64,000 nucleotides of DNA from Tubulanus polymorphus (GCF_964204645.1 NC_134036.1:1054001-1118000), one strand, 5' to 3'; numbered from the stretch's first letter, positions 28,101 through 53,645 are shown. Notes: generated by a model from the letters alone, not told the origin. Translations and numbers: made by a program.

Positions 28101-31100
28101 AACTCATAACTCGTGGACCTGGGTCCAGTGTTCCACAAACCTCGGTAGAAAATCAACTCAAGAGTTTTAATTTTAAACTCATCTCGAGTTAAACGTAACT
28201 GAAAACTGTGGGATTATTTATTGTTCGTAGAATCAATATTTGGTTGGTTATAAGAATATTCTTTTTAGTTGAGAGTAAATGAAGTCTATCTGAAGTACTA
28301 TCCAATCATATTTAACCAACATAGAATTTCTTGCCGTACGTTCAGTTCTAGTTGACTTTTAGTGAATAGTCTCATATCCTGTTCATATTTGTTGGTCTTA
28401 TTGTCATATAATACAATGTCGTAAATGTGACAGGTATATCAGCCTCGAATCCCGAACAACAAATAATTCTTATGTTTTATTTACAATTCTAGTTTGCAGA
28501 TATCTAGGCAGAAAACCCATTATCTATTATTGCTTTGCTTATTTAACAAACTTTTTGAGTTGGAAGTCGTTTCGTTTATCACATTTTATTTAACATAATC
28601 AATTATATATCAAACATTGATAATTAGTACTCACTCCATTCAGCGTAACAATCGGCTGCGTCTGTTCTATCCCATAGTGTAACTTCATGTACCACGTATT
28701 GAGTTCCGAGATCAATTCTAATCCAGGCGTCTTGATCCTCATTAGTGTGACATAGTTCAGCACCACCACTTGTTACCGTCTGACCATCTGTACATTTACT
28801 ACCGGGTGAGAGAGTGGATGACATGTTAACTGTTTTACCACGAGCCACGTTACCTACAAAACACATTTTGTGTAGAAGCGATTTAGACACAGCGGAAAAT
28901 TATCTTCAAAAAATTTCTTAAAAGCATTTTTCTTGAGACCTTGTTTTTCAAAACTTTTCACATCATTATTCCTGTTATGATTCATGTATGGGCAGTTCAA
29001 TAATAACCGATCACATGGCAGGTTTGAGTAGTTAATCCGTTAATCTAGGATAAATCTGAGGTTCAGTGATATTTGACCTGACTAACTGGAGCAGAAACAG
29101 AAACTTTACCGATTTGACAAGCTGGTCCGGTCCATCCTGGTGGTGTCCAGGGATATGGAGTTTTTATTGTAGACTCACATGCAGTGTTAGGATTTGGACA
29201 CGTTAAAGCGCCATTTATATTCTGACCCTTTGTTGGACAAACATTCATGGCTGTATTACTGCAATGACACTCCCAACCAGTACAACTCTTCCCAAAACAT
29301 TTTGCTGAAATGACGAAAACATGGTTTTGAAACCTTCAGGAATTTGTAGAATCGTCTCGTTCCATTTTTGAATTACCTGCAGTCGCCGTTTGGTAAGATA
29401 CAGTTTGGGTGTAGACTAACTTCTGAGTGACGTCATTCTTTACACCAACTCTAACTTCATAATCAGTATATGGTTCTAATCCTGTTAGTGTGTGGCCGGT
29501 AGGTTGCGCCACTGTTGTGGTCCATATTTGTCCGAGTTGTTTATATTCGACTTGATAAACAGCTTTAGTGACGTCACACTGTAACTCTGCAGCAGTTAAA
29601 GCCTGCAACATAATAATAATTCACTACACGTTTGTATCGTGTGTCAGTGAAAGAGAAGGTGCACATTTTCTTTGCTTCCAATGGAAATAAATGAACATCA
29701 GGTGAATTTATGTAATTCTGCTCGAGACACACTTACGGTCCATGCAAGTATCAGATAGGCTGTCTGGAGCCACGTGTTACTGTTCTCAACCGCTGTGGAC
29801 ACCACACGTACATCTTTAGGACCGTTTAATGGATCTACAGTAAAACAAACATGTTTAACACAATTCTGTGTTTGAATTGATGATTTAAGAGTTTATTAGA
29901 ATGAGGGGTTTTTACCTGCACACAAAGTCTGTACAGTTAGTATTGGACTAGTCAGACTCGCAGTTGATACAAGTTGACCGTTCTCTAATTTCTGTAGTCT
30001 AACATCTATCTTATACCCGGTATTAGGAGTTAAACCAGTAATTGTGTGATGTGTAAGGATTCCTGCAGATTCCTGAATAGTCCAAATGTTGTCTGATATC
30101 TTACGATAAACGACTTGATGCTGAACGCTGACAGTACCACGTCCTGAATCTACTACAGAACCCGAGTAAGCTGTCCAACTGACTTTTACACTGTTATCTG
30201 TCAGCGCAGATTTTGTTAATTGCGAAAACAACTTAAATCCTGAAAAAGGATATCAACTTATACTGACGTACGTTTCACGGTTATTTTACTTTCAGTCATG
30301 TTCACTTGGCATCATTTTCTATTCATATTGGTTACTATATTTAGGTAGTTGGAGTGAGATTCCCAGGAATCCATGATTCAGTGTAATATACCTGACTCGC
30401 ACCACTTTCCGATGTAATTCTGTGAACAGCCAGATTTACAGATACCACTCAAATAGTTACAATTACTTTCACTGTTGTTGTAACATGAATAACATTCAAT
30501 CATACATCCAAATGAGTTCGATCCCTTACTGCAATCACCGGGCGCTAAACAAACATTTAAAAGTAACAGTAACTTTCGTTTTCATTTCAAAAATTGTTCG
30601 ATTTTTCAGAGATTATGTTCTTAGTCTCCAGAAATTCAATCTAGTCTTAACATTTAGAAAATATCATTTGTTCGATATTTTGGGTAAATTCTTATTACAA
30701 ATATCACTGAATATTTTTGAGAAAGGGAAAATTTGTTTTCATACGTTCTCAATTTTACATATAAAGTTATGCAAAATTGTTTGACATTCTTCCACGAGTC
30801 AATGAATATTTTTCAATCGACCTAATTTTTGTAATCTGTATAATGTATGATCAAATAGATTTCACAGAGGTAGTTATGAAAAACTTACCGATATATTTGA
30901 ACCCGATAACTTCTATTTCTGCCAGGCTGAGATACTCTGCTTTACCAATGTCCTTGTGATGAACGGTGACGTATCGTCCAACTATAGGACCCGGGCTGCA
31001 TGATAATTTTTCATGTTCACCGCAAAGAGGAGATTCCTGGTAAGCACATTTCTGGTTAGATGTAGAAATACTCGGGCTATTCCCAACTCGAATCTCCAGG

Positions 31101-34098
31101 TTGCGCGCGCGTTTTTCTAAGAAAAGAAATTTCGAAATATCGAAGTTTCGAAATGTCGCAGTCAACTCCGTAAAAACAGAAAATAATGCATGGAATTTAG
31201 GGAAGTTGAGAATTTCATCGATTGCTGAACAATTCTATTCGAGTTCGTTTGAAAACGGATGGACTTATTTGCAAAGAAAATTTAAAAGCTGCGAAATATC
31301 TCGGATTATGTTCGTAAAAAACTGGAAGAACTTCGTCGATTGTTTTGGATGCAAAATAATTCTATTCAAATTCTATAGAAAAAGAAGTGGACAAGAATTA
31401 TAGAGAAAAAAAAAGAAGTAGGATAAATTCATTGTTTTCGATTCAAAATCTTCCAACAACGTATTTTGACTGTTTTCACGGATGATAATGACCCAAAGTT
31501 CCACAGTTATAATATACAATGAAATGGAAGAAAGAGTGAAAATTTTAGAAATTTTGTTCTTGAGTTAAAACTGTATCAATTTATCTCGAGCCAAACGTGG
31601 AACGGAATTCAGGATATTTGTGGTTCCTAAAGAATCCATCAATAATTGGTCGATTTTAAGAGTCTCTCGCTCGTCTAAACAGGATTCATATCTAATGAGG
31701 CTTTTCCAGGTGTATTTTCATTCTCATTTTCTATCAGATTTCATCAATCATATTAGCAATGATAATTTGTACTCACTCCACGCGTCTTCAGGGTTACCGG
31801 TGCAACCAGTCGCGTCTGTTCTATCCCAAAGTGTAACTTCATGTACGACGTATTGAGCACCGAGATCAATTCTCATCCAAGCGTCTTGATCCTCATCAGT
31901 GTGACATACTTCAGCACCACCCGTCCCAGTATCCGTCTGACCATCTGTGCATTTATCGCCAGTCCCATGCCGCTTCAAATGGGATGACATAGTAACTGTT
32001 TTACCACGAGCCACGTTTCCTACAAAACACATTTTGTGTAGAATCGATTGAGTGCCAGTTTTTCAAAACGAACCTTTCTTTAGTGTTAGAGATTCAATTC
32101 AAATGCATCGAACTTGATTTCTTTTTTTCTGAACAAACATTTCATTTTTTTCCTCAATTCAAACAATTTGTGTTGGTCTTAGACTCGAATCACAGCAGTT
32201 CCCGGATGTTTGACATTTTCATGAACATAATGCATTTCAGTTCCGTTTTCCCTCATATGGGATTTCAATAAAAGCCGCTTCGCACGATGGATTAGTAGAG
32301 TTAATCCGTTTAACTCAGATAAATCAAACGGTCAGTGATATTTGACCTGACCCCGGTTTACTGGAGCAGAAACAGTTGATACAGAAAACTTACCGATTTG
32401 ACAAGCTGGTCCGGTCCATCCTGGTGGTGTCCAGGGATACGGAGTTTTTATTGTAGACTCACATGCAGTGTTATGATTTGGACACGTTAAAGCGCCATCT
32501 ATATTCTGACCCTTTATTGGACATATGTTCACGGCTGTATTACTGCAATGACACTCCCAACCAGTACAACTCTTCCCAAAACATTTTGCTGAAATAACAT
32601 TAACGAGATATTTTGCTGAAACAATCCTGCCAGTGACAGAGTTTCTTTCTGTAGTTCTTCTCTGGCTCTCAACCCCTGACAATTGATAGTTTGAATCCTG
32701 ACAGTGACAGAAATTCTTTTTGTAGTTGTACTCTGAGCTCTCCACCCCCGACAATTGATAGTTTGAATCCTGACAGTGACACAGTTTCTTTCTGTAGTTC
32801 TTCTCTGAGCTCTCCATCCCCGACAATTGATAGTTTGAATCCTGACAGCGACAGAGTTTCTTTCTGTAGTTCTTCTCTGAGCTCTCCACCCCCGACAATT
32901 GATAGTTTGAATCCTGACAGTGACAGAGTTTCTTTCTGTAGTTCTTCTCTGAGCTTTCCACCCCGACAATTGATAGTTTGAATCCTGACAGTGACAGAGT
33001 TTCTTTCTGTAGTTCTTCTCTGAGCTCTCCACCCCCGACAATTGATGGTTTGAATCCTGACAGTGACAGAGTTTCTTTCTGTAGTTCTTCTCTGAGCTTT
33101 CCACCCCGACAATTGATAGTTTGAATCCTGACAGTGACAGAGTTTCTTTCTGTAGTTCTTCTCTGAGCTTTCCACCCCGACAATTGATAGTTTGAATCCT
33201 GACAGTGACAGAGTTTCTTTCTGTAGTTCTTCTCTGAGCTTTCCACCCCGACAATTGATAGTTTGAATCCTGACAGTGACAGAGTTTCTTTCTGTAGTTC
33301 TTCTCTGAGCTTTCCACCCCGACAATTGATAGTTTGAATCCTGACAGTGACAGAGTTTCTTTCTGTAGTTCTTCTCTGAGCTTTCCACCCCGACAATTGA
33401 TAGTTTGAATCCTGACAGTGACAGAGTTTCTTTCTGTAGTTCTTCTCTGAGCTTTCCACCCCGACAATTGATAGTTTGAATCCTGACAGTGACAGAGTTT
33501 CTTTCTGTAGTTCTTCTCTGAGCTTTCCACCCCGACAATTGATAGTTTGAATCCTGACAGTGACAGAGTTTCTTTCTGTAGTTCTTCTCTGAGCTTTCCA
33601 CCCCGACAATTGATAGTTTGAATCCTGACAGTGACAGAGTTTCTTTCTGTAGTTCTTCTCTGAGCTTTCCACCCCGACAATTGATAGTTTGAATCCTGAC
33701 AGTGACAGAGTTTCTTTCTGTAGTTCTTCTCTGAGCTTTCCACCCCGACAATTGATAGTTTGAATCCTGACAGTGACAGAGTTTCTTTCTGTAGTTCTTC
33801 TCTGAGCTTTCCACCCCGACAATTGATAGTTTGAATCCTGACAGTGACAGAGTTTCTTTCTGTTGTTCTTCTCCGAGCCCTCCACCCCCGACAATTGATG
33901 GTTTGAATCCTGACAGTGACAGAGTTTCTTTCTGTAGTTCTTCTCTGAGCTCTCCATCCCCGACAATTGATAGTTCTACGTGTTAACAACTCTGGAACCA
34001 ATAAATTTATATTGATTTAACTCACCTGATGTGTTTGTGATGAATAAACATAGAATCAACAACAGCAAAAAACGAAAGATGTTTCTTTCACGATACAT
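22121..34098 (-). CDS. Receptor-type PTP-like gene, copy A: SP-[EGF-like/F-type lectin/EGF/FN3/FN3]-[EGF-like/F-type lectin/EGF/FN3]-FN3-membrane-proximal domain-TM-PTP D1(C>G)-PTP D2
   Basis: SP exon 34026-34098 (MYRERNIFRFLLLLILCLFITNTS). Lectin exons ~31776-32018 + ~30889-31116 and 28635-28853 + 27793-28020. TM exon 25720-25865 (IIGGVVAAVLILLLVAVVLLIVW). D1 motifs KNRFPNIL, DYINAN, WRMIWQE, KCHRYWP, WPDHGVP, HGRAGAGRTG. D2 motifs KSRYKDILP, FINA, DFWQMIFD, WPED, HCMDSTTRTG. Last exon 22121-22195 ends ...DTYVNLS*. The exons I checked are open and phase-compatible. Confidence 0.85.
32626..33975. repeat. 71/72-bp minisatellite, ~19 copies, in the intron after the SP exon of copy A
   Basis: Unit GACAGTGACAGAGTTTCTTTCTGTAGTTCTTCTCTGAGCTTTCCACCCCGACAATTGATAGTTTGAATCCT; the central copies are identical. 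Confidence 0.97.
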
Positions 34099-36029
34099 TT
34101 TGTTCATCTGAAATGACGCAATCTAATATCACTTATTTATAGTCATGTGATTAACTCACTTTTATATATGAAAATTACGCAGTTGAGAATAACAAGAATA
34201 TTTTCAAGGGGGGGGGGGAGGTGGCCAGAACACAACATCGCGGGCCTCAGAGTTAGAAGTAGGTGTGTTATAAATGAAACAAGAAAAAACAAATCTTTGA
34301 AAAGTAAAAAGAAAATTTATCAAAAATGAAAAAAATAAACTTCAATTCATTGTGTTCTTGTTAAACACGATAGACTGGGCCCCCTTTCATGTAAAATAAG
34401 ACAAACCATAGGTTTTTCCCGCGTTAAAAAAAACAGGTCTCAGATGAATGAACGTAGATATTAAAGGAATGCGCATTATATGAGAAAGATTTATATACAC
34501 AATATTGAATACAGATATATCCAGGGGCAGAATATTTTAACCACGCGCAAAAAAAATCATCTAGACGTATCGGCCCCACTCCGCGCGGTTGCGCCATTGG
34601 CGGGATTTACGCGAAGCAGCAGAACACAAACACGGCCATTCTCTCAATTTTCAACGATAGAAATCGTGTGTACATTTCATTTATTTCGGCTGTTAGGGTT
34701 TTAAGGCACAATATAAGTTGATGATGTGATATGGCGATGTTAATTAATGATAATTCCGCAGTGAAGCTAGTCACGAACGGTGCCGATTGAGTGTACAGCT
34801 GCCAAAAACACTGAAATGTGCGTAGTTGCGTAACTATTTGCAGTGAATTGCAGACGAAACATGAAGCCTTAACGGCCGTTTAAAAAAAAATTATACCAAT
34901 CGCAATTGTAAAATAAAAATGAGATAGAACCTAAGTTAAATTTTGGCCATTTCTAAAATGTTATTACTAATTTTTAGTCAGTGCCGAACGTTTAGTTTTC
35001 CAACAATAATGAGGGGTGGTAGGTAGTCATGCAATTCAAGTCATCATTTATTACACGTTACCTCCGTGTTGTTGAAAATCTCGCGAGTCCTGGACTAAAC
35101 CCCAATGAACAATGTGATCTGTGTGCTGGCCACAAATGCACACAGATGACACTACACTACCCATTACACACTCCAGTACCCACAGTTTTCATATATCCAT
35201 CCAAATATTTAGAGTGTCTTTCTTCCTGGATATTAGTATCCGTAATATCTATATTTCCCATTTTTCAGTAGTTTAAGAACGTTAACAATAATATGGCTTG
35301 CGCGGGTTGAATTTTCTTGACAGTTTTCACGACCACTGATCTTTGATATGAGATAAGCGGTATTTTTCTGAAAAACTGTAACAAAACATATAAAATCATT
35401 TATGAAATACATGACCACTTGAGTTTGAGATAACGCAGCCCCCCACTGCGCGCCGCAACATGTCACTGAACATGGAACTTTGCTGGTGAAATTTTTTTGA
35501 ATGATCGATTTCACTTTCGTGAAAAATCTTCATTTCATTTCCTTTATAAAGGTGTATGTATAAAATAATTTATGTTGATCTGTTTAAGTGATGGTTCCAG
35601 GATGTTTGACATTTATCTCAATGATGAATTTCATTTCAGTTTTCCCCTTATAAGGACATTAAAATGAGACAAGCCATCGGGTTTTCCCCCATCGCACAAA
35701 ATAGGTCTCAGATAAATGTGGGTACTCATCGTCAGATGATAACGCCACCTATTGCTGCAGAATTAAAACCGAGATCACAGTGAGTTGTATTGCAGCAGTG
35801 AGGCTGCAACACGACGTTCAGCCATCTATATTTTCATGACAGATAATAAGATATAAAATCTAAAGGATATGAATAACAGAACAGTCTTGATCAAAGTTGT
35901 TTGAAAGTGTGGTTTATCGTAACCATTATTTGATATCACGATAGTTAGAGTGTGATTCTTTTTTGAAAACTAGGTCTCTGGGTTTTGAAACCATTCGTAA
36001 TTCATGGTAAGATCGAAAATCCATAAAAG

Positions 36030-36490
36030 CAAAAACAGTACATATCTCATTTTCTAATGAGTGTATATATTTATTATAGCGAACGTTTTCGGGAGTTACA
36101 TTATCCCCTCTTCAGGCATAGCGCAAGTGATTAAATTTACATATCATATTGGTATTTATATAGAATAAGACGAAGCTAATTACAAACAATTTCAAACCAT
36201 TCAGTGACAGTTAGTTATAATAAGAATAAAAGGTAATTAATGACATACGATCCAAATTACTGAATGACTCAACTTGACTAATAGTTAGTTATCTAAAAAC
36301 CCGTGTTCAAATAGTTGTTGATTGAGGGAGGGCTGTTGAGTTTTCATAAAACGTGCTTCTCTAATTTTGCAATCTAAATCAGAAAATGCTTAATCAAAAA
36401 TTTTGAAATTCACTAAACGAGACCTGATAATCACGGAAATTTGACAGATGTTGGCGAATTGCTGAAGTCTTTAGTTTATGCTCCTGTACC
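36030..36490 (-). mobile_element. Penelope-like retroelement 3' remnant (end of GIY-YIG region plus hammerhead-like motif)
   Basis: Broken frames give TSAIRQHL... and DLDCKIREARFMKTQQPSLNQQ. These are followed by CTGAAGA-GGGGA..CTCCC-GAAA-ACGTTC (~36079-36118) and AATAAA. Confidence 0.65.
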
Positions 36491-36662
36491 CGGTTTTATA
36501 GACAAATCATTGGTTTTTCCCCGTGTTACAAAAACAGGTCTTCGATGAATGAACGTAGATATTAAAGGAATGCGCATTTATATTAGAAAGATCAATATGC
36601 ATAATAATATTGAATATAGAAGTTTCCAGGGGCCGAATATTTTATTCGTTTCGTTTCGTTTT

Positions 36663-39600
36663 TTAATTATCTGCAGTCGCCGTTTTGTGGTTAACAGTTT
36701 GGGTGTAGACAAACTTCTGAGTGACGTAATTCTTAACACCAACTCTAACTTCATAATCAGTATATGGTTTTAATCCTGTAAGTGTGTGGCCGGTAGGTTG
36801 CGCCACTGTTGTGGTCCATGTTTGCCCGTTCAGTTGTTTATACTCGACTTGATAAACAGCTTTAGTGACGTCACACAGTAACTCTGCAGCAGTTAAAGCC
36901 TGCAATAGAAGAGATAATTCACCACATATTTTCATCGTGTGTCAGTGAAAGAGAAGGTGCATAAATGAGCATCAGGTGAATACATGTAATTGTGGTTGAA
37001 GCACACTTACGGTCCACGCAAGTATCAGATTGGTTGTCTGGAGCCGCGTGTTGCTGCTGTTCTCAACCGCTTTGGACACCACACGAACATCTTTAGGACC
37101 GTTTAATGGATCTACAGTAAAACAAACATTTTTAACACAATTCTGTGTTTGAATTGATGATTAAGAGTTTATTAGAATGAGAGGTTTTTACCTGCACACA
37201 AAGTCTGTACAGTTAGTACTGGACTAGTCAGACTCGCAGTTGATACAAGTTGACTGTTCACTAATTTCTGTAGTCTAACAGCTATCTTATACCCGGTATT
37301 AGGAGTTAAACCAGTAATTGTGTGATGTGTAAGGATTCCTGCAGTTTCCTGATTAGTCCAAGTGTTTTCTGATATCTTACGATAAACGACTTGATACTGA
37401 ACGCTGACAGTACCACGACCTGAATCTACTACAGAACCCGAGTAAGCTGTCCATCTGACTTTAACACTGTTATCTGTCAGTGCAGATTTTCTTAATTGAG
37501 AAAACAACTTCAATTCTGAAATTAGAAAATTCGATGTTAGTTTTAGATGGATCTTTCTTTAGTTCTTACTTTTGTCATTTCCATTCGGGATCAGATTTGA
37601 TTCATATCAATCATACTTAAGGAACAGCTAGGAATGAGATTCCCAGGAATCTATGAATCAGTGTAATATACCTGACTCGCACCACTTTCCGATGTAATTC
37701 TGTGAACAGCCAGATTCACAGATACCACTCAAATAGTCACAACTTTCACTGTTGTAACATGGATAACATTCGATCATACATCCAAATGAGTTCGATCCCT
37801 TACTGCAATCGCCGGGTGCTAAACAAAAAACCAAGAAATCCAAAGGTGATACGAAAAACTATTATTTTCATCTTTTCATCTTATAAATGTCCTTATTAGT
37901 CTCTCAATATTTCTGAATCAATGTCTTTATATAAAGATAAAGATCTTTTTCATACGCTCTCAATTTTTTATAGTTATGTAAAACTTACCGATATATTTGA
38001 ACCCGATAACTTCTATTTCTGCCAGGCCGAGAAACTCTCGCCTACCAATGTTCTTGTGTTGAACGGTGACGTATCGTCCAACTATAGGACGTGGGCTGCA
38101 TGATAATGTTTTATGTGTTCCACAGAGAGGGGGGCCCTGGTAAGCACATTTCTGGTTAGATGTAGAACTACTTGTTAAATCGCCATATTCATTTCCAACT
38201 CGAATCTCCAGGTTGCGTGCGCGTTTTTCTGAGTGAGAGAATAAAGATGCTTTGAATCATGAAAACAAAAAATAATGCACAAAATCCGGGAAGCTGAAAA
38301 TTGCTTTGGGTGCAAAACGATTCTGTTCAAGTTCTTTTGAAAAATAAGTAAGGGGCCGTGCATATAGAACGTTCGCTTGACTTCCGGTTATATTAACCCA
38401 TCCACTTCCCCTTTTTATACCCCCCCCCCACCTTGCGTACATACTTTTATGAGAGCCCCTTGTGAAACTGAATTAGTCAGGATCCATGCTCTAAACAAGG
38501 AAAAAGTCACCAGATTCCCACGACGAAGTGAAAGCAGAGAGTGGGAAATTCCCAGGAAATACCACGAAATATAGACATTTGTAAAAATCACATTTTGTTT
38601 GTCCAAAAGTATGTACACTTTGAGCTCCTCTCCTCCCCCCCCCCCCCCGCTAAGATGTTGAAACGTTGGAAAAATTGATTCAAGATTTTCCAATGACGCA
38701 TTTTCTACGAAGTTGTCATCCATGGATACCACAGACACATTGTTGTCGAACTGACTTTATTTACAGATTATTGATGACTGAGGGTTCAATATTTCAACTC
38801 ATCTCATAGAATCCATCAATGATTGGTTAGTTTTGAAGATATTTCATCTACTAGACGGAATTTATATCTAACGAGACTTTTCCAGTTAAAAGTTATATTT
38901 TTTTCAGATTTGACCGAAATAATCAATGAAATAATCAACATTAATAATTCGTACTCACTCCACGCGTATCTAGGGTGACCGGTGCAACCAGCCGCGTCTG
39001 TTCTATCCCAAAGTGTAACTTCATTTACCACGTATTGAGTTCCGAGATCAATTCTAATCCAGGCGTCTTGATCCGCTAAAGTGTGACACATTCCACTTAC
39101 CGTCTGACCATCTGTACATTCACTACCGGGATACAACGCAAAAGGGGATGACGTTGTAACTGTTTTACCACGAGCCACGTTTCCTACAAAACACATTTTG
39201 TGAATAAAAGATTTGAATTATTTCACGAATTTTCAAAACGAACAAAAACAAATTGATTCAAAGTTATTTCACAATTTCAACTAGAATTAAACAAAACTAA
39301 CATTTTTTTTTCTTTACGCGATGAAATAATTAAGAGTTGATCTCAGTTCGTCGACAGTTCCCTGGTGTTTCATAAATCTATGATATCTTTACTAATAGAT
39401 TTTTTCCAGCTTATGGATTAGTGACGTTAATCCGTATATGGATTAGTGTTAGTGTTATTCCGTTAATCTGAGATAAATCTAATGAAATTTACAACATTCA
39501 TTTGTATATTTTTTAGATTTATTTTTGTAAAGGCTTTTACGGAGTTAATCCGTAAATCTGATATAAATCCGAGGTTCAGTGATATTTGACCTGACCCCGG

Positions 39601-40139
39601 TTTACTGGAGCAAAAACAGAAAACTGACCGATTTGACAAGCTGGTCCGGTCCATCCTGGTGGTGTCCAGGGATACGGAGTTCTTATTGTAGACTCACATG
39701 CAGTGTTAGGATTTGGACACGTTAAAGCGCCATCTATATTCTGACCCTTTATTGGACATTGGTCCACGGCTGTATTACTGCAATGACACTCCCAACCAGT
39801 ACAACTCTTGCCAAAACATTTTGCTGAAATAACAAAAACTAGATTATCTAAAAAAATGTCCACTCACCAAACAATCCTGACAGTAATAGAGTTTCTTTCT
39901 GTAGTTCTCTGAGCTGTCCATCCCCGACAATTGATAGTTTGAATCCGGACAGTGACAGAGTTTTCTGGTCACATCTTACTGAGGTCTACTTTAAGGTGTG
40001 AAATGTCAAATCTATAATTTCTACGTTTTCAACAGCTCTGGAACCAATGAGTATTGATTAACTCACCTGATGTGTTTGTGATGAATAGACATAGAATCAA
40101 CAACAGCAGAAAACGAAAGATGTTTCTTTCACGATACAT
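36663..40139 (-). CDS. Ectodomain-only paralog (copy S), predicted secreted, ~513 aa: SP-EGF-like-F-type lectin-EGF-FN3-FN3. Exons: 40067-40139, 39629-39823, 38959-39183, 37989-38228, 37672-37818, 37192-37515, 37011-37111, 36663-36899
   Basis: Eight open, phase-compatible exons totalling 1542 nt. The donor after the last FN3 exon is GCAG|ataatt instead of the paralogs' GCAG|gtaat, so the frame reads through to ...TATADN*. AATAAA on - at 36641-36646. No TM or PTP exons lie between it and copy A. Confidence 0.7.
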
Positions 40140-42188: not shown

Positions 42189-42409
42189 ATAAGTAACGAG
42201 ACGAGTAGCTCTGTATAGGTTAACTTTTTATTTGACGCACGAGGATTTCGCTACTAATGAATAGAAGTTTCATCAGGTGAATGGGTCCTGATGAAGTTTC
42301 TATTCATTAGAAGCGAAAGCTCGTGCGTCAAATAAATAGTTAACCTATACAGCACTACTCGTCTCGTTACTTATTTTAAACCTGGTTAACACGGCTACTC
42401 TACGAATAC
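42189..42409. mobile_element. Inverted-repeat insertion with two hammerhead-like motifs (Penelope pLTR-type remnant)
   Basis: ~92-bp inverted arms (42185-42277 and 42287-42378), each containing CTGATGA-stem-GAAA. Flanked by TTTATATAAA direct repeats. The paralogous site at ~54730-54739 is empty. Confidence 0.7.
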
Positions 42410-42567
42410 TTTATATAAAGCAAAGGAAATGCGATTTAGTTGCAAACCGATGCACCAAGTTAGTTCACACTTTTATTCCTTCAGTTCCAAAACTCAAGTC
42501 TTATTTTAGTTGTTGTTTTTAGATCTATCAAAATGATTTCTTCATTTCTTCTCTTCAAGTTGTAGTT

Positions 42568-45500
42568 CTAATTGAGGGTCATATAAGTGTCGAATCCGTG
42601 GAAGTTGAATATCACAAGGTCATGCAGCAACTTGTATTGTTCCTAAAAATGAAAAAAAGTTATATCAATAACTGACACTATCAATTCTTTCTAAGAGCAT
42701 TTTGAAGTTAATTTCTTACCAAATTTGGAATGAATTGAGGTCGTGTCATTCGTAGTTTTTGTACAGAGTGATAGATATCGATTTGCTCGCTAGATGGCAC
42801 CTTGGTGATCAGTTCAAATGCCGCACAAAATAGCCCCGTTCTCGTGGTGCTGTTCCTGTAAAATTTGCATAATCGATAAATATGTGATGGAGTTTTGAAT
42901 AAATGATTGATGTTACTAAGATACGAACATGCAATGTACAACAATAGGACTGGTCACGTGTTCTCTTGTAACTAACTTCACAAACTCGAATAGATATTGT
43001 AAATCAGGAACTGACTTATCCTCAGGCCATCCTAAAAACTGGATCTGACGAATCCGACGCGATTCCTGTAGTGAAATATAGGCTAACATGCATTGTTATG
43101 TTAAATAATGTTAATGGTAATGTTAAATAGCAATGTCAATGAAGGATAATTTCGTAAAATGCGGCCATCTTTCTCTGAACATATGGCTATCGAAAATAAA
43201 TCAACCTACATTCTGTTTTTGGAGGATCAAATCCCGACGAACGATGGTCTTACAGGGCAATTGAACTTCCTTAACGGTGATCGTAAAAGGACCGAATTTG
43301 ATACTTCCAACTGCAGGATAATAGCTTGCATATGTCTGAAATCAAAAGAAATCTTAAATCTTAGAAAAAGACATCTGCAAAGCAGTGCTAGACATTGGAG
43401 TAAGCCTTACCGGATCTTGTGGATATTCTTGATGCATCATTACGATAAGTTCACAGTTATAGTCAAAGATCATTTGCCAGAAGTCAGTAATTGTCTTTTG
43501 TAGAGGACTTTGTGTTGCTATAAACACGTTGTCATTTGTGATCGTCTGTAAAAAAGAAAGTATTTACATCAGTCAGGTTCTTACATCTTATCGATATCTC
43601 AACTAAAGAATTTCTAGGCCTTTTCTATCTCAGCCCAGATATTCCATGGATGGCTATGAAATCATAATCAAACTCACGTGCACAAATGAAGCATTGATGA
43701 ACCCTTTATGTGAGAGTTGCGGTTGATACTGTGCCTCAGGAAGGATGTCTTTGTATCGAGACTTGTTAACATTGTTGAGTAGTTTGGCCACTGCTAGTGA
43801 TTCCTCGTCTTGAATTGGAGTCGATGCCTTGAACACCTGTATTAATTAATAGAAGCTCAGTGAAAAAATTGTTTCCTCAAAACCAAACCAAGATGAAACA
43901 ATTTGGACCCCGAAGGAGGAACGATTTGGTCTCTAGTTTAACTTGGTCCGTGGATTAATTGCTGCCATCTTAATGTATGTTCTCAGGCTTCGAAACCTTC
44001 ATCTCATTTTGGCCGATCTTAATACGTACAAGAAATTGTTCCTCTATTTTATCAGACACGTTTTTAGATACTGGTCGCGTTGCCTTTCTTTCCTCGTATG
44101 ATTCTCTGAAACTCGTGGTCGTGTATGCCACTGGTCCCAGTATCAGTTCCTCCAGTAGAATCTGGTGCACGAGAATGTACTGTTTCTGAAGTAGATAGTA
44201 ATAAAGGAACACGTTGAAGTTATCCATTTTGGAAGCGTGAAATGAGAGGCAGTAACTTTGTTAAGATTTACCATATTTTGGATCATTTCTGGTCTTTGTT
44301 GTCGTAATTTCCTAAACATGTCGAATACGTTAACGAGTCCATCTTTCTTAGCTTTTTCAAGAAGCTGCTCCGTTGCGATATAACAACCTGTCCTTCCAGC
44401 ACCAGCACTGAGAACACAACACAAACAATAACATTTCTACACGTCTCCTTAACGGTAAAGGACTGGAAGATTTTCGAATTAATTTACCTGCCATGAATCA
44501 GCACAAGTCCCTGATCCGGGTCGGTAAGACGCTGTTTGATGAACTGTTGCATACGAACAACAGATGAAGCCGGGAACGGTACACCATGATCCGGCCATCC
44601 TCGATAGTGACAAACTAACAGATTATGTGCTTGTTTGTGGCCACGCTATAAAATACATCTAACGTTACTCATCGAGAGAGAGACTGGTTATAGATACTGC
44701 TTATGTGATACAATGTAACATCGAAACAAAACCTCATCATAAAATGTTGTCATATTGATGTTTACACGTATGAAGTCGTTTGAAATTACAGATAACAGCA
44801 CTTATATAGGTCACTAGGTGCCATGGTGAAACAAGAGTATGATCATTACCTTTGTAATCGATAGGAAATGAACCACTGCCGGAGGCTCAGTGTGTTTTTC
44901 CATTTTCTCTGCAACTGTCACTGTAATATCTCCATATCGACCTATTGCATCCAGTTTTGTTGGCCAATATCGATGACATTTCACCTGCAATTGGAATATG
45001 AAGAGACACATTTTTCCTAATTCTCTTGTTTACACAGAAGCATCTGAAAGCAATTTTTGCCGCCACCTTCTTATCTTTGCCTTGTCCTTCAGTAAGATCA
45101 GTAAGTACAATAATAGCCGGACATTTCTCTTGCCAAATCATCCGCCAATGGTCATTGATTGTAGATAGCAATGGAGCTGAAAGAGCAAGTTAGATGAGCG
45201 CATAAGTAACATAAACATATAAAATATGGGAAAGATAACAAGACTTACCCTGGCAAGCAATGCATATCAAATGACCAGTTAATCCCTGAAAATGAGATAT
45301 CCATATCATCTACAACATCATCATATGCACATGACAAAAACTTCTCAAGAACAGAAGGATTGATTCCTTACCCGAATATAATTGGCATTGATGTAATCTG
45401 ATGTTGGTTCTTCACCGGTTTGTTCCAGAACAACTCTAGTCGAATCATCTAGAAAAACAACACAAAATTAAGTCAATAGAACGACAAAAACCTGGAGAGA

Positions 45501-48500
45501 TGTTGTATGCGATAGAACGTATTTGGACATGATCACCAGGTAATACTTACAGGCCAATATGTTTGGAAACCTGTTTTTCTCAAGATTTTCCACTTTCTCA
45601 GCGCACTCGCTCAATCCTCGTCTCAACCTGAGAACACTCTACAGACAAAATAGATCCAAAAAATAATCCCATGTCTTACCGACGAGCAGTCCCAACTTCC
45701 CAGCAATTCTACCTGAAATTCTTCATCCATATTCTTCCACTCATCAGAGGTCTTCATTAAGGTCTCTCCCAACAGGTCACAAATCATAGTAGCGCCTTTA
45801 GAAGCGATTTCGTAGTGATGATCCTCGCCATCTTGCTTACCGTTTACTGGTCTCGGATCGTCATAGATATTGAAATACGCGGAGCTTTCTGTATAGAGAG
45901 GAACCATTAGTGTTCAAACATTGGGCTTCAACTTTTCAAAATCAAAAAGCTTTATTAGACAAACCTCTTGAAAATGTAGAATTTACAAAAGCAGTATTTT
46001 CCTGTCTTGGGATACCCTTCAATCTTGCCAATGGTTTACCAATTATTTTATCGGAAGGTGAAATATTCACTATGGATATTTCTGCATTGTGCGATGTTTC
46101 TTTAGTTTTGAATCCACCGCGTCTGGAAGATGTAAAAACGTTAAGGCATCTAATTGAGGGGTAACTCAATGAGATATTTTTGGTGAATAGAGGGGAATCG
46201 GGCCATTTTCAAATGATGAAATATATGCATTGTATTATAGAGGTCGCCACTATTCACTCGTACCTCCAAACTATAACCAGAACAACAGCCACCAATAAAA
46301 GTATTAAAACTGCTGCAACAACGCCACCTATTATCCCTGCATTATTAGACGGTGCTTTAACAGTGATTCTCTCTTGCTGTTCTATTGGTGGATAATGCCG
46401 AAATATTTCCTGAACAATGGAAAAGAATTGATTGAAGTCATCTTCGAATTGTAAACTAGAATTTATATTTAAAGACAATATGAACTCACTCCGTAATAAT
46501 TCTCAACGATTCCTAAAATAAAACTGTAAGATTTCCCAGTTTCTAGAGGAGCATTAAAGTAACCACTATAGTTACGTGTATCACCAACTATAAACTCAGA
46601 AGGCTCTTTCGGTGGTAGAAATGCTGCAGTAATATAAACTGATAATCCTCGCTGTTTAGCTTTTTCGTACGAGACGTACTGTGATTGGTTGACTGTACGA
46701 TTATGGCGACGGTTGATTGGTCCATCGTGTTTCTTCACGATCACCTCGTAACCGCTGCAAATCATCAGATAAAAATTGTTTTCTTAAATCATGCATTATT
46801 TATAGATGAAAATAAGAGGACACTTACGTAATGTTACCAGTGTTATTAACGCGTGGTATTTGAAGTGTAACAGTCGTGTCTGTTACCGCTGTCTTCTTGA
46901 TAACCAGTTTAGGAATTGTTATTTTACCTGAAATTGAAGAATAAAGCTGTTGACACGTGACTTCAATGGAAACTTGAGGTTGCTGTTTTAACAACTTACC
47001 CGTTGTCCAGAAGCTTACACTGGCAGGCAAACTTTCGCCTTTACTAGTTGAGGCAAAAATTGAACAGTTGTATTGAGTAAAAGGTATCAGTGATGTCGTT
47101 ATGTTTATAGTCGTGGTGGAGCCTTCGATTTCAGGTTTGTTGAATGTTTTTCTTTCTGATAAAGGTGTTGTGGAAGTTGAACTGATGGGTTCACACGTGA
47201 GCTGAAAACAGAAAGGAGACATGTTTAAGTATAGAGCAGGTGGTGCCCTCTACTGGTCAGGACAAGAGAATTCCTACACGATAATTAGTGATATCACCAT
47301 TGGGACGGTTTGGTGGTGTCCATGTCAATGTAGTGTTCAATGTATCCCTTGTGAATGAGAAGTCGAGAGAAGCGGGAGGTCCTGGTACTGAAATAAATAC
47401 CACAGACACATTTAACGTATACAATACAATTCTGCGATTCTCCAACATGTCGTTTTACTTACTTCCAACCTGCGTCAAAAAGTGAACTTTTTTACTCCAT
47501 GGTCCCCAACCCTTTTTGCCTTGTGCCATTACCTATGATGTATCACATTGCTTTAATTTCAATGCATTGTTGAGAAAAGCGAGATTTATAAATTCGCACC
47601 TACCTGGCAACCATACCATTTGTTTTGTGTGAGTCCAGTCACTGTTTTTGTAAGCACAGTTGGTTCAACATCCTCCCTTATAAATTCCTGAATTTGATCA
47701 GAATTATTTTTAGTGGCGTTGCCACACATGAAATTATATTTGATAATTCTTGCTAACGGAGGAACAGGAGAACTCCACGCGAATATGATACTGTTTGGAG
47801 CAGCTGATCGAGCTTCAGGGATCGGTACACCTGGAACTGAAATGTATAAACACATCAAGTTTCTCAAGGTTCATTTATGGATTCATTCCTCAGATTTGAG
47901 GACAGATGAGTTGAATTTCGAAAACTCACCAGCTTCGTCAGTTGTGAATATTTTGCTTGGAGATTCTTCACTGGAACCTTTACTGTTCACCCAGTTATAC
48001 GTCAATTCATACTCTGTAAACGGAATCAGTTTATCTATTCTGAACTGTTTATTCGATGTCGTTCCATCTTTAACAAGTTTCATCGTATCTTTCTCCAGTA
48101 ACTTGTATCTGTAATGTTTGAGAGGTCCGTGTTGGTTTTCACACGCCAAATCCTTGAAAGTGGCATCAATATAAGTGTCTGGCTTGGATACGCTATTTGG
48201 AATAGTCTCAACAGTGACATCAGCCAAGTCAGGTTTACCAGTTGGTTCTGTAACATTGAGGGAAATATTTATTGGTTACAACCGCATTTTTATATCAATC
48301 GAATTTATTTCATAAATCTACAACTAACCAGACTGAAGAGTTATCCCGGTAACAGTCCTCTTGTTTAGATCTAAGCCACCAGCCGAGGTTTCGGCCGAGA
48401 CCGTGATTTCATATTCCGCATAAGGCTTTAACCCAGTGAATACATGTTCTACAGCAGTATTTGATGAAAGTGAAATCTCTTTAGGTTCACCGCCCTGTGC

Positions 48501-51500
48501 TGGAGTCGGACAAGTTTTATATCTGAGAAGTTTGTACCACAATCTGTATTGAATGATAATTCCATTTGGTTTATCAGGTGTAGAACATGTGACTCTGAAG
48601 CCGCTGTTTGTTTGCCGGGACACAGTGAGTGACGTCACAGGTCCAGGAGCTGAAGTAAATGGAAAAATGGCAAATGCGATCAAAATATCTGTGACCAAGA
48701 GTGACGGACGGTTAACTAACCAGTGCTGGAACAGTGTAGTGGGTGTCTGGGATCCTAAGTAAGATCTTTCTTTTAAATTACCTGAGTCTCTATGATAAAA
48801 ATTTGGAAGATCTGTCTCTAATTTCAGATTACCTGCAGTCGGCGTTTGGTAATTTATAGTTTGGTTGTAGATAAACTTCTGAGTGACGTCATTCTTTACA
48901 CCAACTCTAACTTCATAATCAGTGTATGGTTCTAGTCCTGTTAGTGTGTGGCCGGTAGGTTGCGCCACAGTTGTGGTCCATGTTTGTCCGTTCAGTTGTT
49001 TATATTTGACTTGATAAACAGTTTTAGTGACGTCACACTGTAACTGCGCAGCAGTTAAAGCCTGCAACATAATGATAATTCACTACGTAGTAGTCAAATG
49101 AAACACTCTAATCGGTGTACGCTATTCGAAGAAGTCCCACAATGCGAATTGTATATGAAACAACTCATTAAAACAAAACCACAACGGCTATGGACTATAA
49201 CAGCGCACATCAGGTGAAATGACCAGAAAACCTCTTAATTATCAACGTATTAATGAACATAGATTAGATATCAGTTATCAAATGCATGACAGTGGGATTG
49301 CAAACCTTGCTTTTACAACCGACCACCAATTTGACTTTCAGAATTCGAAACTCATTTATCCTTGCAAAGACATCCATAAGAGACACATAGTTGAATCAGC
49401 CCTTTTTTGTAAACTTTCGAAATCCAACATAACTTCCATCATCCGGCCACATAATCAATTATTATCTTGAGATATCAACTCTCTACTAGATTTTGGTTAA
49501 TGTCACTTTGTGTCACACTGCCTTCTCCGTCATCTTCTACTCCTCCGGGGCCGGTTCCATAGTCAAGGCTTAAAATAAGTCTAGTCTTAAGTAATTTTTT
49601 TTCTTAAATCCTCTAAGATCGACTTAACTAAGTTAGTCTTAATTTTGCGTTCCAAAGAGTGGTCTTAGTCTAAGACCAGACTTAAGATTTAAGACCACTT
49701 TTTGGGCATAATTCTCGGAACCGGCCCCTGGTCTACTTCATTTAGTTACATAATTGTATTCATCCTTAGAATTAAATTGTGGTTTCTACGGTAACCCTGG
49801 TTGTTTTCATTTGTCATCTATTCTGTTTACATTTATTCTGACACATCGCTTTTGTTAATGTCCTGTAAGTTTATATGCCAGATGCAACGTTACTTCTGTT
49901 TTCTGGTCATTCCACCTGATAATGGCTGTTAGTCAACAGCCGAAACGTTGAGGTTCCGTTTTGATAAATTGATACATTGCATAAAAATTCGAATTTTGTG
50001 GGACTTCTTCGGTTAATTTACAATATGTCTGTATCGTGTCTCAGTGAAAGAGAAGGTTCACATGCAATTGGATTTATGTAATTCTGGTTGAGGCACACTT
50101 ACGGTCCACGCAAGTATGAGATTGGTTGTCTGGGGCCACGTGTTACTGTTCTCAACCGCTGTGGACACCACACGAACATCTTTAGGACCGTTTAATGGAT
50201 CTACAGTAAAACAAACATGTTAAACACAATTCTGTGTTTGAATTGATGATTAAGAGTTTATTAGAATGAGGGGTTTTTACCTGCACACAAAGTCTGTACA
50301 TTTAGTACTGGACTAGTCAGACTCGCAGTTGATACAAGTTGACTGTTCCCTAATTTCTGTAGTCTAACAGCTATCTTATACCCAGTATCAGGAGTTAAAC
50401 CAGTAATTGTGTGATGTGTAAGGACTCCTGCAGATTCCTGATTAGTCCAAGTGTTTTCTGATATCTTACGATAATCGACTTGATAATGGACGCTGACAGT
50501 ACCACGTCCTGAATCTACTACAGAACCCGAGTAAGCTGTCCAACTGACTTTTACACTGTAATCTGTCAGCGCATATTTTGTCAATGGAGAAAACAATTTA
50601 AATTCTGAAAAAGAAAATTGATTTGTATTGAAGTTTCATGTATATATTACTTTCGGTCATTTCTGATTCATATTGGTTACTATATTTCGGGAAAAGGAAG
50701 TGAGTTTAATTCTGAAAAACAAATCGATGTTAAATTTAGGTGAATCAAATAAAATGAAGTGTAAGGATCTTTTACTTCCGGTCATTTCTGATTCATATTG
50801 TTTAATATATTCAGGGAATAGGGAGTGAGATTCCAGGAATCTATGATTCAGTGTAATATACCTGACTCGCACCACTTTCCGATGTAATTCTGTGAACAGC
50901 CGGATTGACAGGTACCATTCAAATAGTTACAACTTTCACTGTTGTAACATGGATAACATTCAATCATACATCCAAATGAGTTCGATCCCTTACTGCAATC
51001 ACCGGGTGCTAAACAGACATTTTAAACGTGATACGTAAATATGAATTGTTTGACATTCTTCCACGAGTCAATGAATATTTCTCAATCGACCTAATTTTTG
51101 TAATCTGTATAATGTATGATCAAATAGATTTCACAGAGGTAGTTATGAAAAACTTACCGATATATTTGAACCCGATAACTTCTATTTCTGCCAGTGCGAG
51201 ATACTCTGCTTTACCAATGTTCTTGTGTTGAACGGTGACGTATTGTCCAACTATAGGACCTGTGCTGCATGCTGATGTTTTATTTTTACCACAGAGAGGG
51301 GGCCCCTGGTAAGCACATATCGGGTTAGATGTAGAAATACTTGTATTGGTGCCATATTCATTTCCAACTCGAATCTCCATGTTGCGCGCGCGTTTTTCTG
51401 AGAAAAAATTAAGAAGCTTTGAAATATCGCAGTTTACTCCGTGAAAACAAAATTAATGCGCAAAATCAGAGAAGTTTAAAATTGCTTTGAGTGCAAAACA

Positions 51501-53645
51501 ATTCTGTTCAAGTTCTTTTGAAAAATAAGTAAAGAGGCCGTGCATAAAGTACGTACGCTTGACTTGCGGTTATTTTTAACCCTCCATCCCATGTATGTTT
51601 TTGATATCTCTCCGAGTACATATGAGAGAGAACCCTGTGAAACTGAATTTGTCAGGATTCATGCCCTAAACAAGAGTGGGAAATTACCAGGAAACCCCAC
51701 GAAATATAGGAGGCATTTGTAAAAATCACATTGTGTTTCGTGCAACTGTAAATATTAACCCCTAAGGAAAAGTATGTACACTTTGAGCTTCCCTTCTACC
51801 CCCCCCCCCCCACTACAGGCGCACGGCCCATAACACAAATTTATTGTTATCGACTGAAAATTTTCGGAAAAGTTGATTCAAAATTTTCCAATGACGTATT
51901 TTTTCAGACACATTGTTGTCGAACTGACTTCATTTACAGATTATTGATTATTGATGACTCAGAGTTCGATATTTCGGTAGAGTTCAATATTTCAACTCAT
52001 CTTGTTTAAACGTAGGGTAACTGAAAACTGTATGGAACTGAGTCCGGGATATTTATTTGTGATTCCTAGAATCGATCATTAATTGTTTGATTTTGAAGAT
52101 ATTTCATCTTTTAAAGGGAGTTTATATTCAAAGAGGCTTTTCGAGTTTAAAGTTGTATTTTTTTTCTATCAGATTTGACCGAATGAAATAATCAATGAAA
52201 TAATCAACAATAATAATTTATACTCACTCCACTCACTCCACTCAGCGGTGCAACCAGCCGCGTCTGTTCTATCCCAAAGTGTAACATTATGTACCACGTA
52301 TTGAGTTCCGAGATCAATTCTAATCCAGGCGTCTTGATCCGCTTCAGTGTGACAAATCTCTTTACCACCAATCCAAGTATTCGTAGCACTTACCGTCCGA
52401 CCATCTACACATTTACTACCGGAATGGGCATAGTAAGTGGATGACATTGTAACTGTTTTACCACGAGCCACGTTTCCTACAAAACACATTTTGTGTAGAA
52501 TCAATTTAGATTCAGCAGAAAATTATTTCATGATTTTTTTCGAAACATACATTTTATTTTTGTGATACACTTTTTCTTCACGCGATGAACCAATTAGAGT
52601 CTCAGTTTATTGAGTCGCAGCAGTTCCCCGGATGTTTCATGTCTGACATTTTTATCAACGAAAATCTGAATTATTTCAATAATTTATCACGCGAGGTATT
52701 AGAGTTAATCCGTTAATCTAAAAAAACTGGGGTTCAGTAATATAAAACCTGTGATCCCTATTAACTGGAGCAGAAACCTGACCCCGGTTTACTGGAGCAG
52801 AAACAGTTGATACAGAAAACTTACCGATTTGACAAGCTGGTCCGGTCCATCCTGGCGGTGTCCAGGGATACGGAATTTTTATTGTAGACTCACATGCAGT
52901 GTTAGGATTTGGACACGTTAAAGCGCCATCTATATTCTGACCCTTTATTGGACAAACGTCCAAGGCTGTATTACTGCAATGACACTCCCAACCAGTACAA
53001 CTCTTCCCAAAACATTTTGCTGAAATTACAAGACGAAATTATTTTACCAGAACAATTCTGACAGTGACTGTTTCTTTCTGTAGTTCTTCTCTGAACTCTC
53101 CACTCCCGACAATTGATAGTTGGAATCCTGACAGTGACAGAGTTTCTTTCTGTAGTTCTTCTCTGAGCTCTCCACCCCCGACAATTGATAGTTTGAATCC
53201 TGACAGTGACAGAGTTTCTTTCTGTAGTTCTTCTCTGAGCTCTCCACCCCCGACAATTGATAGTTTGAATTCTGACAGTGACAGAGTTTCTTTCTGTAGT
53301 TCTTCTCTGAGCTCTCCACCCCCGACAATTGATAGTTTGAATCCTGACAGTGACAGAGTTTCTTTCTGTAGTTCTTCTCCGAGCTCTCCACCCCCGACAA
53401 TTGATAGTTTGAACCCTGACAGTGACAGAGTTTCTATCTGTAGTTCTTCTCCGAACTCAACATCGCCGACAATTGCCTTGAAACCGATGGCACCTCTTAG
53501 GGCCGGGTCTGTTATAATAGCAGATTTATCATTTCTACGTTTCAACTAATGAATTATTATTGATTAACTCACCTGATGTGTTTGTGATGAATAAACACAG
53601 AATGAACAACAGCAGAAAACGAAAGATGTTTCTTTCACGGTACAT
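42568..53645 (-). CDS. Receptor-type PTP-like gene, copy B: SP-EGF-like-F-type lectin-EGF-about 6 FN3-membrane-proximal domain-TM-PTP D1(C>G)-PTP D2
   Basis: SP exon 53573-53645. Lectin exons ~52226-52476 and ~51158-51397. FN3 exons span ~47000-50603. TM ~46264-46409. D1 has WPDHGVP and HGSAGAGRTG (GGC codon at 44490-44492). D2 has HCMNSTTRTG. Last exon 42568-42642 ends ...DTYMTLN*. Confidence 0.87.
49200..49960 (+). mobile_element. Penelope-like retroelement 3' remnant in an intron of copy B
   Basis: ORF 49219-49470 QRINEHR...SGIA...DHQFDFQNSKLI...RHIVESAL resembles a PLE GIY-YIG C-terminus. A degenerate hammerhead CTGATAA-TGGCTGTT..AACAGCC-GAAACGTT lies at ~49916-49950. The segment is absent from the homologous introns of copies A and S. 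Confidence 0.7.
49547..49728. mobile_element. MITE nested in a Penelope-like remnant
   Basis: TIR GGGGCCGGTTCC / GGAACCGGCCCC with internal GTCTTAAG-type repeats. Confidence 0.7.
53056..53475. repeat. Same minisatellite, ~6 copies, in the homologous intron of copy B (about 1.3 copies at 39873-39965 in copy S)
   Basis: Same 72-bp unit at the same intron position. Confidence 0.95.

Follow-up and report, generated by a model that had tools for sequence, protein, structure and literature searches.

F-type lectin heads with hypervariable pocket loops in a receptor-tyrosine-phosphatase-like gene family of Tubulanus polymorphus

A stretch of 64,000 nucleotides of the Tubulanus polymorphus genome (GCF_964204645.1, NC_134036.1:1054001-1118000; this whole stretch is hereafter called the window) carries four F-type lectin domains (FTLDs), all on the minus strand and each encoded by two exons, in which a nearly constant framework is interrupted by loops that differ from copy to copy. 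The question raised by this locus is whether these loops have been diversified as the rim of a binding site or have only drifted after duplication. An earlier note on the window described the variable in-frame loops and placed them around the sugar-binding pocket; our analysis confirmed that observation and supported its interpretation. The domains are probably the diversified sugar-binding heads of a young tandem family of receptor-tyrosine-phosphatase-like genes, shaped jointly by selection, insertions and deletions, and exchange between copies.

Variable loops on a conserved lectin scaffold

A six-frame motif search of the window placed the Asn of the framework motif NVARGK at 52474 (copy A), 39181 (B), 32017 (C) and 28851 (D), on the minus strand as the earlier note had reported; the four FTLDs belong to three receptor-tyrosine-phosphatase-like genes, A, B and C+D, and not to four. 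In copies A, B, C and D, respectively, loop 1 reads TYYAHSGSK, PFALYPGSE, HLKRHGTGDK and TLSPGSK, loop 2 reads VSATNTWIGGKEI, VSGM, DTGTGGAEV and VTSGGAEL, and loop 3 reads AAGCTAEWSEW, AAGCTGHPRYAW, ATGCTGNPEDAW and AADCYAEW. The loops had been quoted exactly, but the "WSEY" taken as the conserved end of loop 3 is the noncoding splice donor (TGG A followed by GTGAGTA), and therefore lectin exon 1 ends at the Trp plus one phase base.

The framework is 86-92% identical across the four window copies, and its 46 codons are almost fixed throughout the family, which comprises at least 27 close genomic copies of lectin exon 1, with 24 distinct sequences that occur only once, located for the most part in clusters on contig C12. 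The adjacent EGF-like exon is likewise almost identical between copies, as first noticed, with a family-wide proportion of nonsynonymous differences (pN) of 0.062. With loop boundaries set by anchoring on the invariant blocks, the hypervariable parts are loop 1 (7-14 residues), loop 2 (4-13 residues), loop 3 (8-12 residues) and the three residues after the CHT motif. Exon 1 occurs in ten lengths, all in frame, and no stop codon was found in the 27 copies, so that the claim of frame-preserving length change holds for the whole family. This contrast between loops and framework recurs in 27 genomic copies and is not due to chance.

Concerning the fold, the best solved-structure matches of the window lectin exons were FBP32 (3cqo), lectinolysin (4gwi/3le0), SpX-1 (2j1r) and eel agglutinin (1k12), with values of 1.3e-9 and 2.8e-7 against 3cqo. 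Window exons were searched singly, whereas work on the complete domain used P0070, a RefSeq paralog, together with the RefSeq models P0152 and P0158. Searched as a complete domain, P0070 had the same best structure matches (3cqo at 7.9e-12 and 1k12 at 7.8e-8) and scored 35.6 bits against Pfam PF22633 (cut-off 27.8), with single exons at 27.7-32; the lectin domain is assigned to PF22633/PF00754. An AlphaFold2 model of P0070:88-240, built with 40 aligned relatives, reached a predicted local distance difference test score (pLDDT) of 85.3 and a predicted template-modelling score (pTM) of 0.84, and its confidence dropped exactly at loop 2 and loop 3. The top ten matches of this model in a Foldseek search of the Protein Data Bank were all F-type lectins, including 3lei, 1k12 (template-modelling score, TM, 0.78), 3cqo (0.79) and 2j1r, which bears out the F-type lectin identity proposed from the motifs.

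Alignment to 1k12, with the roles of the eel agglutinin residues taken from the review by Vasta et al. (PMC5712786), matched the His of CHT to His52, the Arg of WDR to Arg79 and the first Arg of exon 2 to Arg86. Loop 1 corresponds to 1k12 residues 23-34, the first loop likened to a complementarity-determining region (CDR1, with Glu26 and His27), loop 2 to residues 41-50 (CDR2, with Phe45 and Tyr46), and loop 3 to residues 79-86 (CDR4, with Arg79, Asp81 and Cys82-Cys83). The proposal that the variable loops are the CDR-like loops around the His/Arg/Arg site is thereby upheld. The pocket residues themselves are kept: the His in 26 of 27 copies (Leu in L011), the WDR Arg in all 27, and the Arg of the KR pair at the start of exon 2 in each of the 21 exon 2 sequences found. 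The cation-site motif h2DGx is present as C[TVA]DG in 27 of 27 copies, aligned to Asp38-Gly39 of 1k12, and Glu147 is also kept (AEIEV).

The F-type motif has the spacing HX24RXDX4(R/K) (PMC5712786). By alignment, the His-to-Arg spacing of the family is the same as in eel agglutinin, but the RxDx4R element is lengthened, as the earlier note had seen, to RxD-x10 to x14-R by a CDR4 insert of 6-10 residues, and even the shortest form in the family is 6 residues longer than 39 of 39 aligned relatives (NRTDCCxxR). The motif Asp is substituted in L016 (RSG) and L024 (RAQ). In place of the vicinal Cys82-Cys83, whose disulfide stacks on fucose in F-type lectins (PMC5712786) and which is at least 90% conserved as CC in the relatives, the family has A-x-x-C with a single Cys. 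Three older T. polymorphus lectin paralogs, L028 (G000:C4:27.37 Mb), L029 (C12:10.65 Mb) and L030 (C12:9.21 Mb), have 47-52% identity; their exons are split at the same place, their CDR4 is likewise long with a single Cys (DATNCDNNPDNSW), and their loops are far more alike among themselves.

Selection, rate and exchange in the loops

By Nei-Gojobori counting (NG86), the nonsynonymous (dN) and synonymous (dS) divergence of the framework were 0.058 and 0.126, and those of the loops plus the post-His triplet were 0.55 and 0.42; loop dN ranged over 0.55-0.72. As the dS of the EGF exon was 0.12 and that of lectin exon 2 was 0.15, loop dN is approximately 10 times the framework dN and approximately 4-5 times the dS of any of these three partitions.

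Codon models on the paralogs placed the loops under a dN/dS ratio (ω) above 1. In our own implementation of the Goldman-Yang model (GY94), whose M0 likelihood of -2676.06 reproduces the -2676.05 of IQ-TREE, the comparison of M1a with M2a over all columns gave a likelihood-ratio test statistic (LRT) of 178.7, with 24.6% of sites at ω 5.55. Fourteen sites had a posterior above 0.95: seven in loop 1, three in loop 2 and two each in the post-His triplet and loop 3, with none in the 46 framework codons. The LRT was 109.8 with ungapped columns only, and 163, 30 and 15 when three exon segments were placed on their own trees to blunt recombination, compared with 7.2 for the EGF exon and 10.1 for lectin exon 2 as control exons under the same procedure. 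Since site models assume a single synonymous rate and loop dS is itself raised, the loop columns were refitted with their own rate, which gave ω 2.0 over ungapped columns (LRT 12.5, p 4e-4) and ω 1.63 over all loop columns (p 0.0017), against 0.50 for the framework. The post-His triplet, which is ungapped and unambiguously aligned, had ω 2.28. Besides this replacement excess, the loop partition evolves 5-6.6 times faster overall, silent sites included.

These figures bear on two explanations that dispense with adaptive value. Under relaxed constraint, surface loops that tolerate any sequence would change neutrally once the copies had arisen, with purifying selection acting on the buried scaffold; it is in keeping with this idea that the CDRs of F-type lectins generally tolerate insertions and deletions (PMC5712786), that NG86 ω within the loops is near 1 (1.17-1.32) and that loop dS is up along with dN. 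We nevertheless consider relaxed constraint improbable, because loop dN stands at 4-5 times every neutral yardstick (0.12-0.15 for framework, EGF and exon 2 dS, and 0.10-0.12 for intron), ω stays significantly above 1 with the loops at their own rate (2.0, p 4e-4) and is 2.28 in the ungapped triplet, ten in-frame length classes occur without a stop in 27 copies, and the pocket triad is kept. The other explanation, a mutational hot spot in which slippage, insertions and deletions, and short conversion tracts speed the loops by themselves, appears slightly more improbable still. It would account for the faster overall rate that extends to synonymous sites, the 9-bp tandem duplication in loop 3 of copy A and the strong recombination signals described below, but it leaves unexplained why replacement changes exceed silent ones, why none of the 27 copies has a frameshift or a stop, and why the selected sites fall on the pocket-lining CDRs known from solved F-type lectins; splicing of exon 1 to exon 2 in at least one paralog and the long open RefSeq models also speak against it.

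The intron comparison was restricted to flanking intron alignable by BLAST, whose divergence was 0.10-0.12. Rather than being no more divergent than these introns, the loops were more divergent in 92 of 99 pairs for the downstream intron and in 67 of 71 for the upstream one, and among the window pairs they exceeded both introns in 5 of 6. In the pair L019/L026, the introns differ by 1.7% over 480 bases and exon 1 by 19.4% (p 8e-16), with the divergence beginning and ending inside exon 1, and L017/L020 behave alike. When introns were aligned globally in windows, the distances levelled off near p 0.2-0.25 and half of the columns stayed unaligned; raw nucleotide distance is thus unsuited to ordering loops and distant introns, and the codon-based tests were relied on. 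The intron comparison thus supports the divergence of the loops, more weakly than the codon evidence does. A special synonymous constraint on the framework was suggested by a multiple alignment of fixed 100-nt intron windows (p 0.33-0.51), but this value stemmed from indel misalignment, and the idea was dropped because alignable intron divergence was 0.10-0.12 and the dS of the other exons was the same as that of the framework.

Exon 1 also carries strong signs of exchange between copies: the pairwise homoplasy index (PHI) test gave p < 0.0005 (0 of 2000 permutations), and the four-gamete rule requires a minimum number of recombination events (Rm) of at least 17. Across the three exon segments, the closest relative stays the same for only 2 of the 24 unique copies. 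The pairs L005/L023 and L018/L020 each share an identical segment 3 and are unrelated in another segment, and L012/L027 match in segments 1-2 and differ in segment 3; relatedness of the flanking introns is not predictive of exon relatedness. L013 and L017 (G000:C12:1371572 and 1375232) are the two lectin heads of the RefSeq model P0153, and their exons 1 differ by one loop residue and their introns by 0.9%, with a proportion of synonymous differences (pS) of 0.12 between their EGF exons. As heads and introns are near-identical while the EGF exons differ, the pair speaks for recent conversion between modules of this one gene.

Several points weigh against reading the loops as selected parts of diversified receptor heads. 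Loop dS is raised too (NG86 0.42 compared with 0.126), and therefore part of the loop divergence is a matter of rate, to which segment swaps, insertions and deletions, local mutability and misalignment contribute; pair counting inside the loops gives an ω of 1.17-1.32. Recombination inflates the LRTs of site models, and the control exons already stand at LRT 7-10. In seven pairs besides L019/L026 and L017/L020, the whole of exon 1 is about as diverged as the introns, and windowed global alignment gave approximately 0.22 for the adjacent introns and 0.26 for the loops, both near saturation. With the RxDx4R spacing and Cys82-Cys83 absent and CDR2 as short as 4 residues, fucose binding may have been lost altogether in some heads.

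Gene models, exon layout and phosphatase tail

The window contains three signal-peptide exons, starting at 53645, 40139 and 34107/34098, and an EGF-like exon stands upstream of every window lectin exon 1. Each lectin exon 1 starts after ttgtag with G(A/T) and ends at the donor described above, the end being backed by a spliced paralog contig from a public run and by the RefSeq models. Lectin exon 2 is a separate exon, beginning after ag with AA AAA CGC (KRARNLEIRVGN) in all four copies. All exons listed below lie on the minus strand.

Gene A spans 53645 to approximately 42571 and matches the RefSeq model P0158 (1789 aa). Its signal-peptide exon (53573..53645, MYRERNIFRF...) is followed by an EGF-like exon at 52825..53019, nearly identical among copies, and by lectin exon 1 at 52228..52476, with CDR1 at 52412-52438, CDR2 at 52355-52393 and CDR4 at 52229-52261. 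Within this exon, the pocket His is encoded at 52349-52351, the post-His triplet at 52337-52345 and the Arg of WDR at 52268-52270. Lectin exon 2 (51158..51397) starts with KRARNMEIRVGN, whose first Arg is the one aligned to Arg86 of eel agglutinin, and has a fourth length-variable loop after VGN. At 52228-52245, the last 9 bases of lectin exon 1 of copy A, donor included, are tandemly duplicated (TGGAGTGAG twice), which yields two in-frame candidate donors; P0158 takes the distal one, adding Ser-Glu-Trp to CDR4.

Gene B is short and has its own signal-peptide exon (40067-40139), followed by an EGF-like exon (39629..39823), lectin exon 1 (38959..39183; CDR1 39119-39145, CDR2 39089-39100 with 4 residues only, CDR4 38960-38995) and lectin exon 2 (37989..38228), whose frame is open. 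No long RefSeq model was retrieved for this gene.

Gene C+D begins with a signal-peptide exon at 34026-34107 (start 34107/34098) and a first EGF-like exon at 32394..32588. Head C consists of lectin exon 1 at 31777..32019 (CDR1 31952-31981, CDR2 31907-31933, CDR4 31778-31813) and lectin exon 2 at 30889..31116, whose acceptor (ttag, then AAAAACGC) at 31116 agrees with the exon 1-exon 2 joint in the spliced contig of paralog L007. A second EGF-like exon at 29110..29304, without a signal exon of its own and joined in P0152 to the module C FN3 exon, precedes head D, with lectin exon 1 at 28635..28853 (CDR1 28795-28815, CDR2 28753-28776, CDR4 28636-28659) and lectin exon 2 at 27793..28020. Since the RefSeq model P0152 (1820 aa) includes both C (residue 94) and D (residue 583), these are two lectin heads of one receptor. 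At 29304-29372, the second FN3 exon of module C lies approximately 60-70 bases from the EGF exon of module D, and P0152 joins the two exons (...SYQTATA to AKCFGK...), so that the modelled receptor carries two lectin heads that differ from each other.

In a contig from a 2014 public run, the last 23 bases of L007 exon 1 directly abut the first base of exon 2, which gives independent support for this junction and was the sole clean joint recovered. Neither the splice joint of the window copies nor allele information was recovered in four public runs, where contigs are short and branch at paralog differences. The exon-only coverage in runs X2 and X3 suggests that they represent RNA.

A satellite of approximately 72 bp occupies the first intron, between the signal-peptide and EGF exons, at 32623-33975 in gene C+D (approximately 19 units), 53054-53475 in gene A (approximately 6 units) and 39873-39963 in gene B (a remnant), and it yields long spurious open frames on both strands. 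The interval 54400-64000 holds the 3' two-thirds of another receptor copy, whose protein tyrosine phosphatase (PTP) and FN3 exons are 82-96% identical to those of gene A; the lectin exon 1 of this copy (locus L022) lies just past the window end at window-equivalent 64644-64868.

Downstream of the lectin heads, Pfam PF00102 matched P0070 at 7e-126 in two stretches, corresponding to a tandem PTP, and is precomputed for P0152 and P0158 as well, both of which map onto the window. A single transmembrane helix precedes the tandem PTP. The Pfam scan of P0070 further showed an EGF plus F5_F8_type_C_2 head, and no MAM or Ig domain, the mark sought of a type IIB receptor protein tyrosine phosphatase (RPTP), was found in it. 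In 9 of the 11 retrieved models with the motif, including P0153, P0154, P0156 and P0158-P0162, the catalytic Cys of the D1 domain is replaced by Gly in (I/V/L)HGSAGAGRTG. Gene A (P0158) carries IHGSAGAGRTG, and IHCSAGAGRTG occurs only in P0070 and P0155, from the 0.27-0.30 Mb cluster. In P0162, at approximately residues 600-720, the cytoplasmic linker near the membrane contains a repeated unit of approximately 25 residues (NSSREVEETYLNRSQSSTEGNTTHA), each with Tyr-Leu-Asn.

Origin, known parallels and possible ligands

Taken together, the receptors run from a signal peptide through EGF, F-type lectin, a second EGF and FN3 repeats to a transmembrane helix and a pair of PTP domains, and some genes have two heads. 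Jelly-roll scaffold, DG motif of the calcium site and His/Arg/Arg triad are retained in the heads, while the loops ringing the pocket (CDR1, CDR2, the enlarged CDR4 and the three post-His residues) differ in nearly every copy. Three germline processes have probably acted together on these loops: diversifying selection, seen as an excess of amino-acid-changing substitutions; in-frame insertions and deletions; and swaps of short exon segments among paralogs by gene conversion or recombination, for which the invariant framework would supply homology and which would re-assort loop "cassettes". The outcome would be an inherited germline repertoire of at least 24 different binding sites, signaling through a phosphatase tail predicted to be catalytically dead in most copies. 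We infer that the loop changes would alter ligand choice and that the receptors would read different glycans.

The pattern is known from eel fucolectin isoforms and oyster bindin and is carried here by a multigene receptor-phosphatase family. With the eel fucolectins (Anguilla anguilla agglutinin, 1K12; Anguilla japonica isoforms) the worm heads share the fold (TM 0.78), the His/Arg/Arg triad by alignment and the concentration of variation in the pocket loops (PMC5712786). The eel proteins are small, secreted, single-domain serum lectins with canonical RxDx4R and Cys82-Cys83, whereas the worm domain is a membrane-receptor head whose CDR4 has a 6-10 residue insert and a single Cys, and whose CDR2 ranges over 4-13 residues where the review describes CDR2 as conserved in length (PMC5712786). 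Pacific oyster sperm bindin shows positive selection on fucose-pocket sites, recombination and many F-lectin variants (PMC5712786), and the worm family likewise combines selected sites clustered at the pocket with recombination. Bindin is a secreted acrosomal protein of few genes with allelic diversity and alternative splicing of 1-5 repeats, whereas in the worm the variants are distributed among no fewer than 24 paralogous germline heads of receptor-phosphatase genes.

Among architectures with a known phenotype, the nearest is that of the SudRes1 RPTPs of the snail Biomphalaria sudanica, in which MEGF, a galactose-binding-like domain and tandem PTP are combined in 17 clustered paralogs; haplotypes of the locus vary structurally, and an association with schistosome resistance is reported (PMC12297450). 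The worm genes share with SudRes1 the single-pass layout, EGF-type repeats, galactose-binding-like jelly-roll, tandem PTP and clustering; they differ in that the snail domain is not called an F-type lectin, no loop-focused hypervariability is reported for it and FN3 is unmentioned (PMC12297450). No mollusc match to P0070 residues 30-300 was found at E <= 1e-10 in a word-seeded search of proteins of 957-3045 aa sharing exact 5-mers, and the 13 close relatives of the P0070 head in the same search were all from T. polymorphus (E <= 1e-50). Homology of the snail and nemertean heads is therefore unproven. Vertebrate type IIB RPTPs (PTPRK/PTPRT, the names given by RefSeq) also have FN3 repeats, a single transmembrane helix and a pair of PTP domains, but the worm head is EGF plus F-type lectin, not MAM/Ig, and the D1 Cys is mostly Gly. 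Two F-lectin reviews, one of them PMC5712786, mention no phosphatase, FN3 or nemertean architecture, and no literature on nemertean F-type lectins or on lectin-headed RPTPs of T. polymorphus was found.

As for ligands, foreign glycans of microbes, parasites or prey are the leading candidates, at somewhat short of an even chance. The same diversification might instead be directed at glycans of the worm itself or of its species, for recognition between gametes, tissues or neurons, which we judge distinctly less likely. Oyster bindin, whose F-lectin repeat was diversified by pocket-centred positive selection and recombination (PMC5712786), provides a precedent for such a role, yet bindin diversity is allelic and spliced from few genes, unlike an array of more than 20 membrane-receptor genes, and the SudRes1 cluster of the snail is tied to parasite resistance. 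Receptor phosphatases are also classic adhesion and guidance receptors, which would favor ligands of the worm's own. More speculatively, and with a doubtful standing at present, the family may form a combinatorial system in which three CDR "cassettes" are re-assorted by gene conversion across more than 20 genes, some with two unlike heads, at a locus that would be hyperpolymorphic among individuals and would decide pathogen resistance or self/non-self compatibility; under that proposal, the few active and many dead phosphatase tails might, by analogy, resemble the paired activating and inhibitory immune receptors of vertebrates.

Invertebrates lack antibodies, and varied recognition repertoires are known in several of them, such as snail FREPs, amphioxus VCBPs, sea-urchin 185/333 and oyster bindin. 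The present family adds a clear case in Nemertea, for which the searched literature describes no such repertoire, and here the antibody-like hypervariable loops sit on a lectin scaffold wired to a signaling tail instead of being secreted. It also places at least 24 binding sites side by side on a common scaffold, a natural series for relating the length and sequence of CDR1, CDR2 and CDR4 to F-lectin specificity, including an enlarged CDR4 that replaces the canonical Cys-Cys fucose contact. The parallel with SudRes1 suggests that arrays of lectin-headed RPTPs may be a wider recognition system of spiralians.

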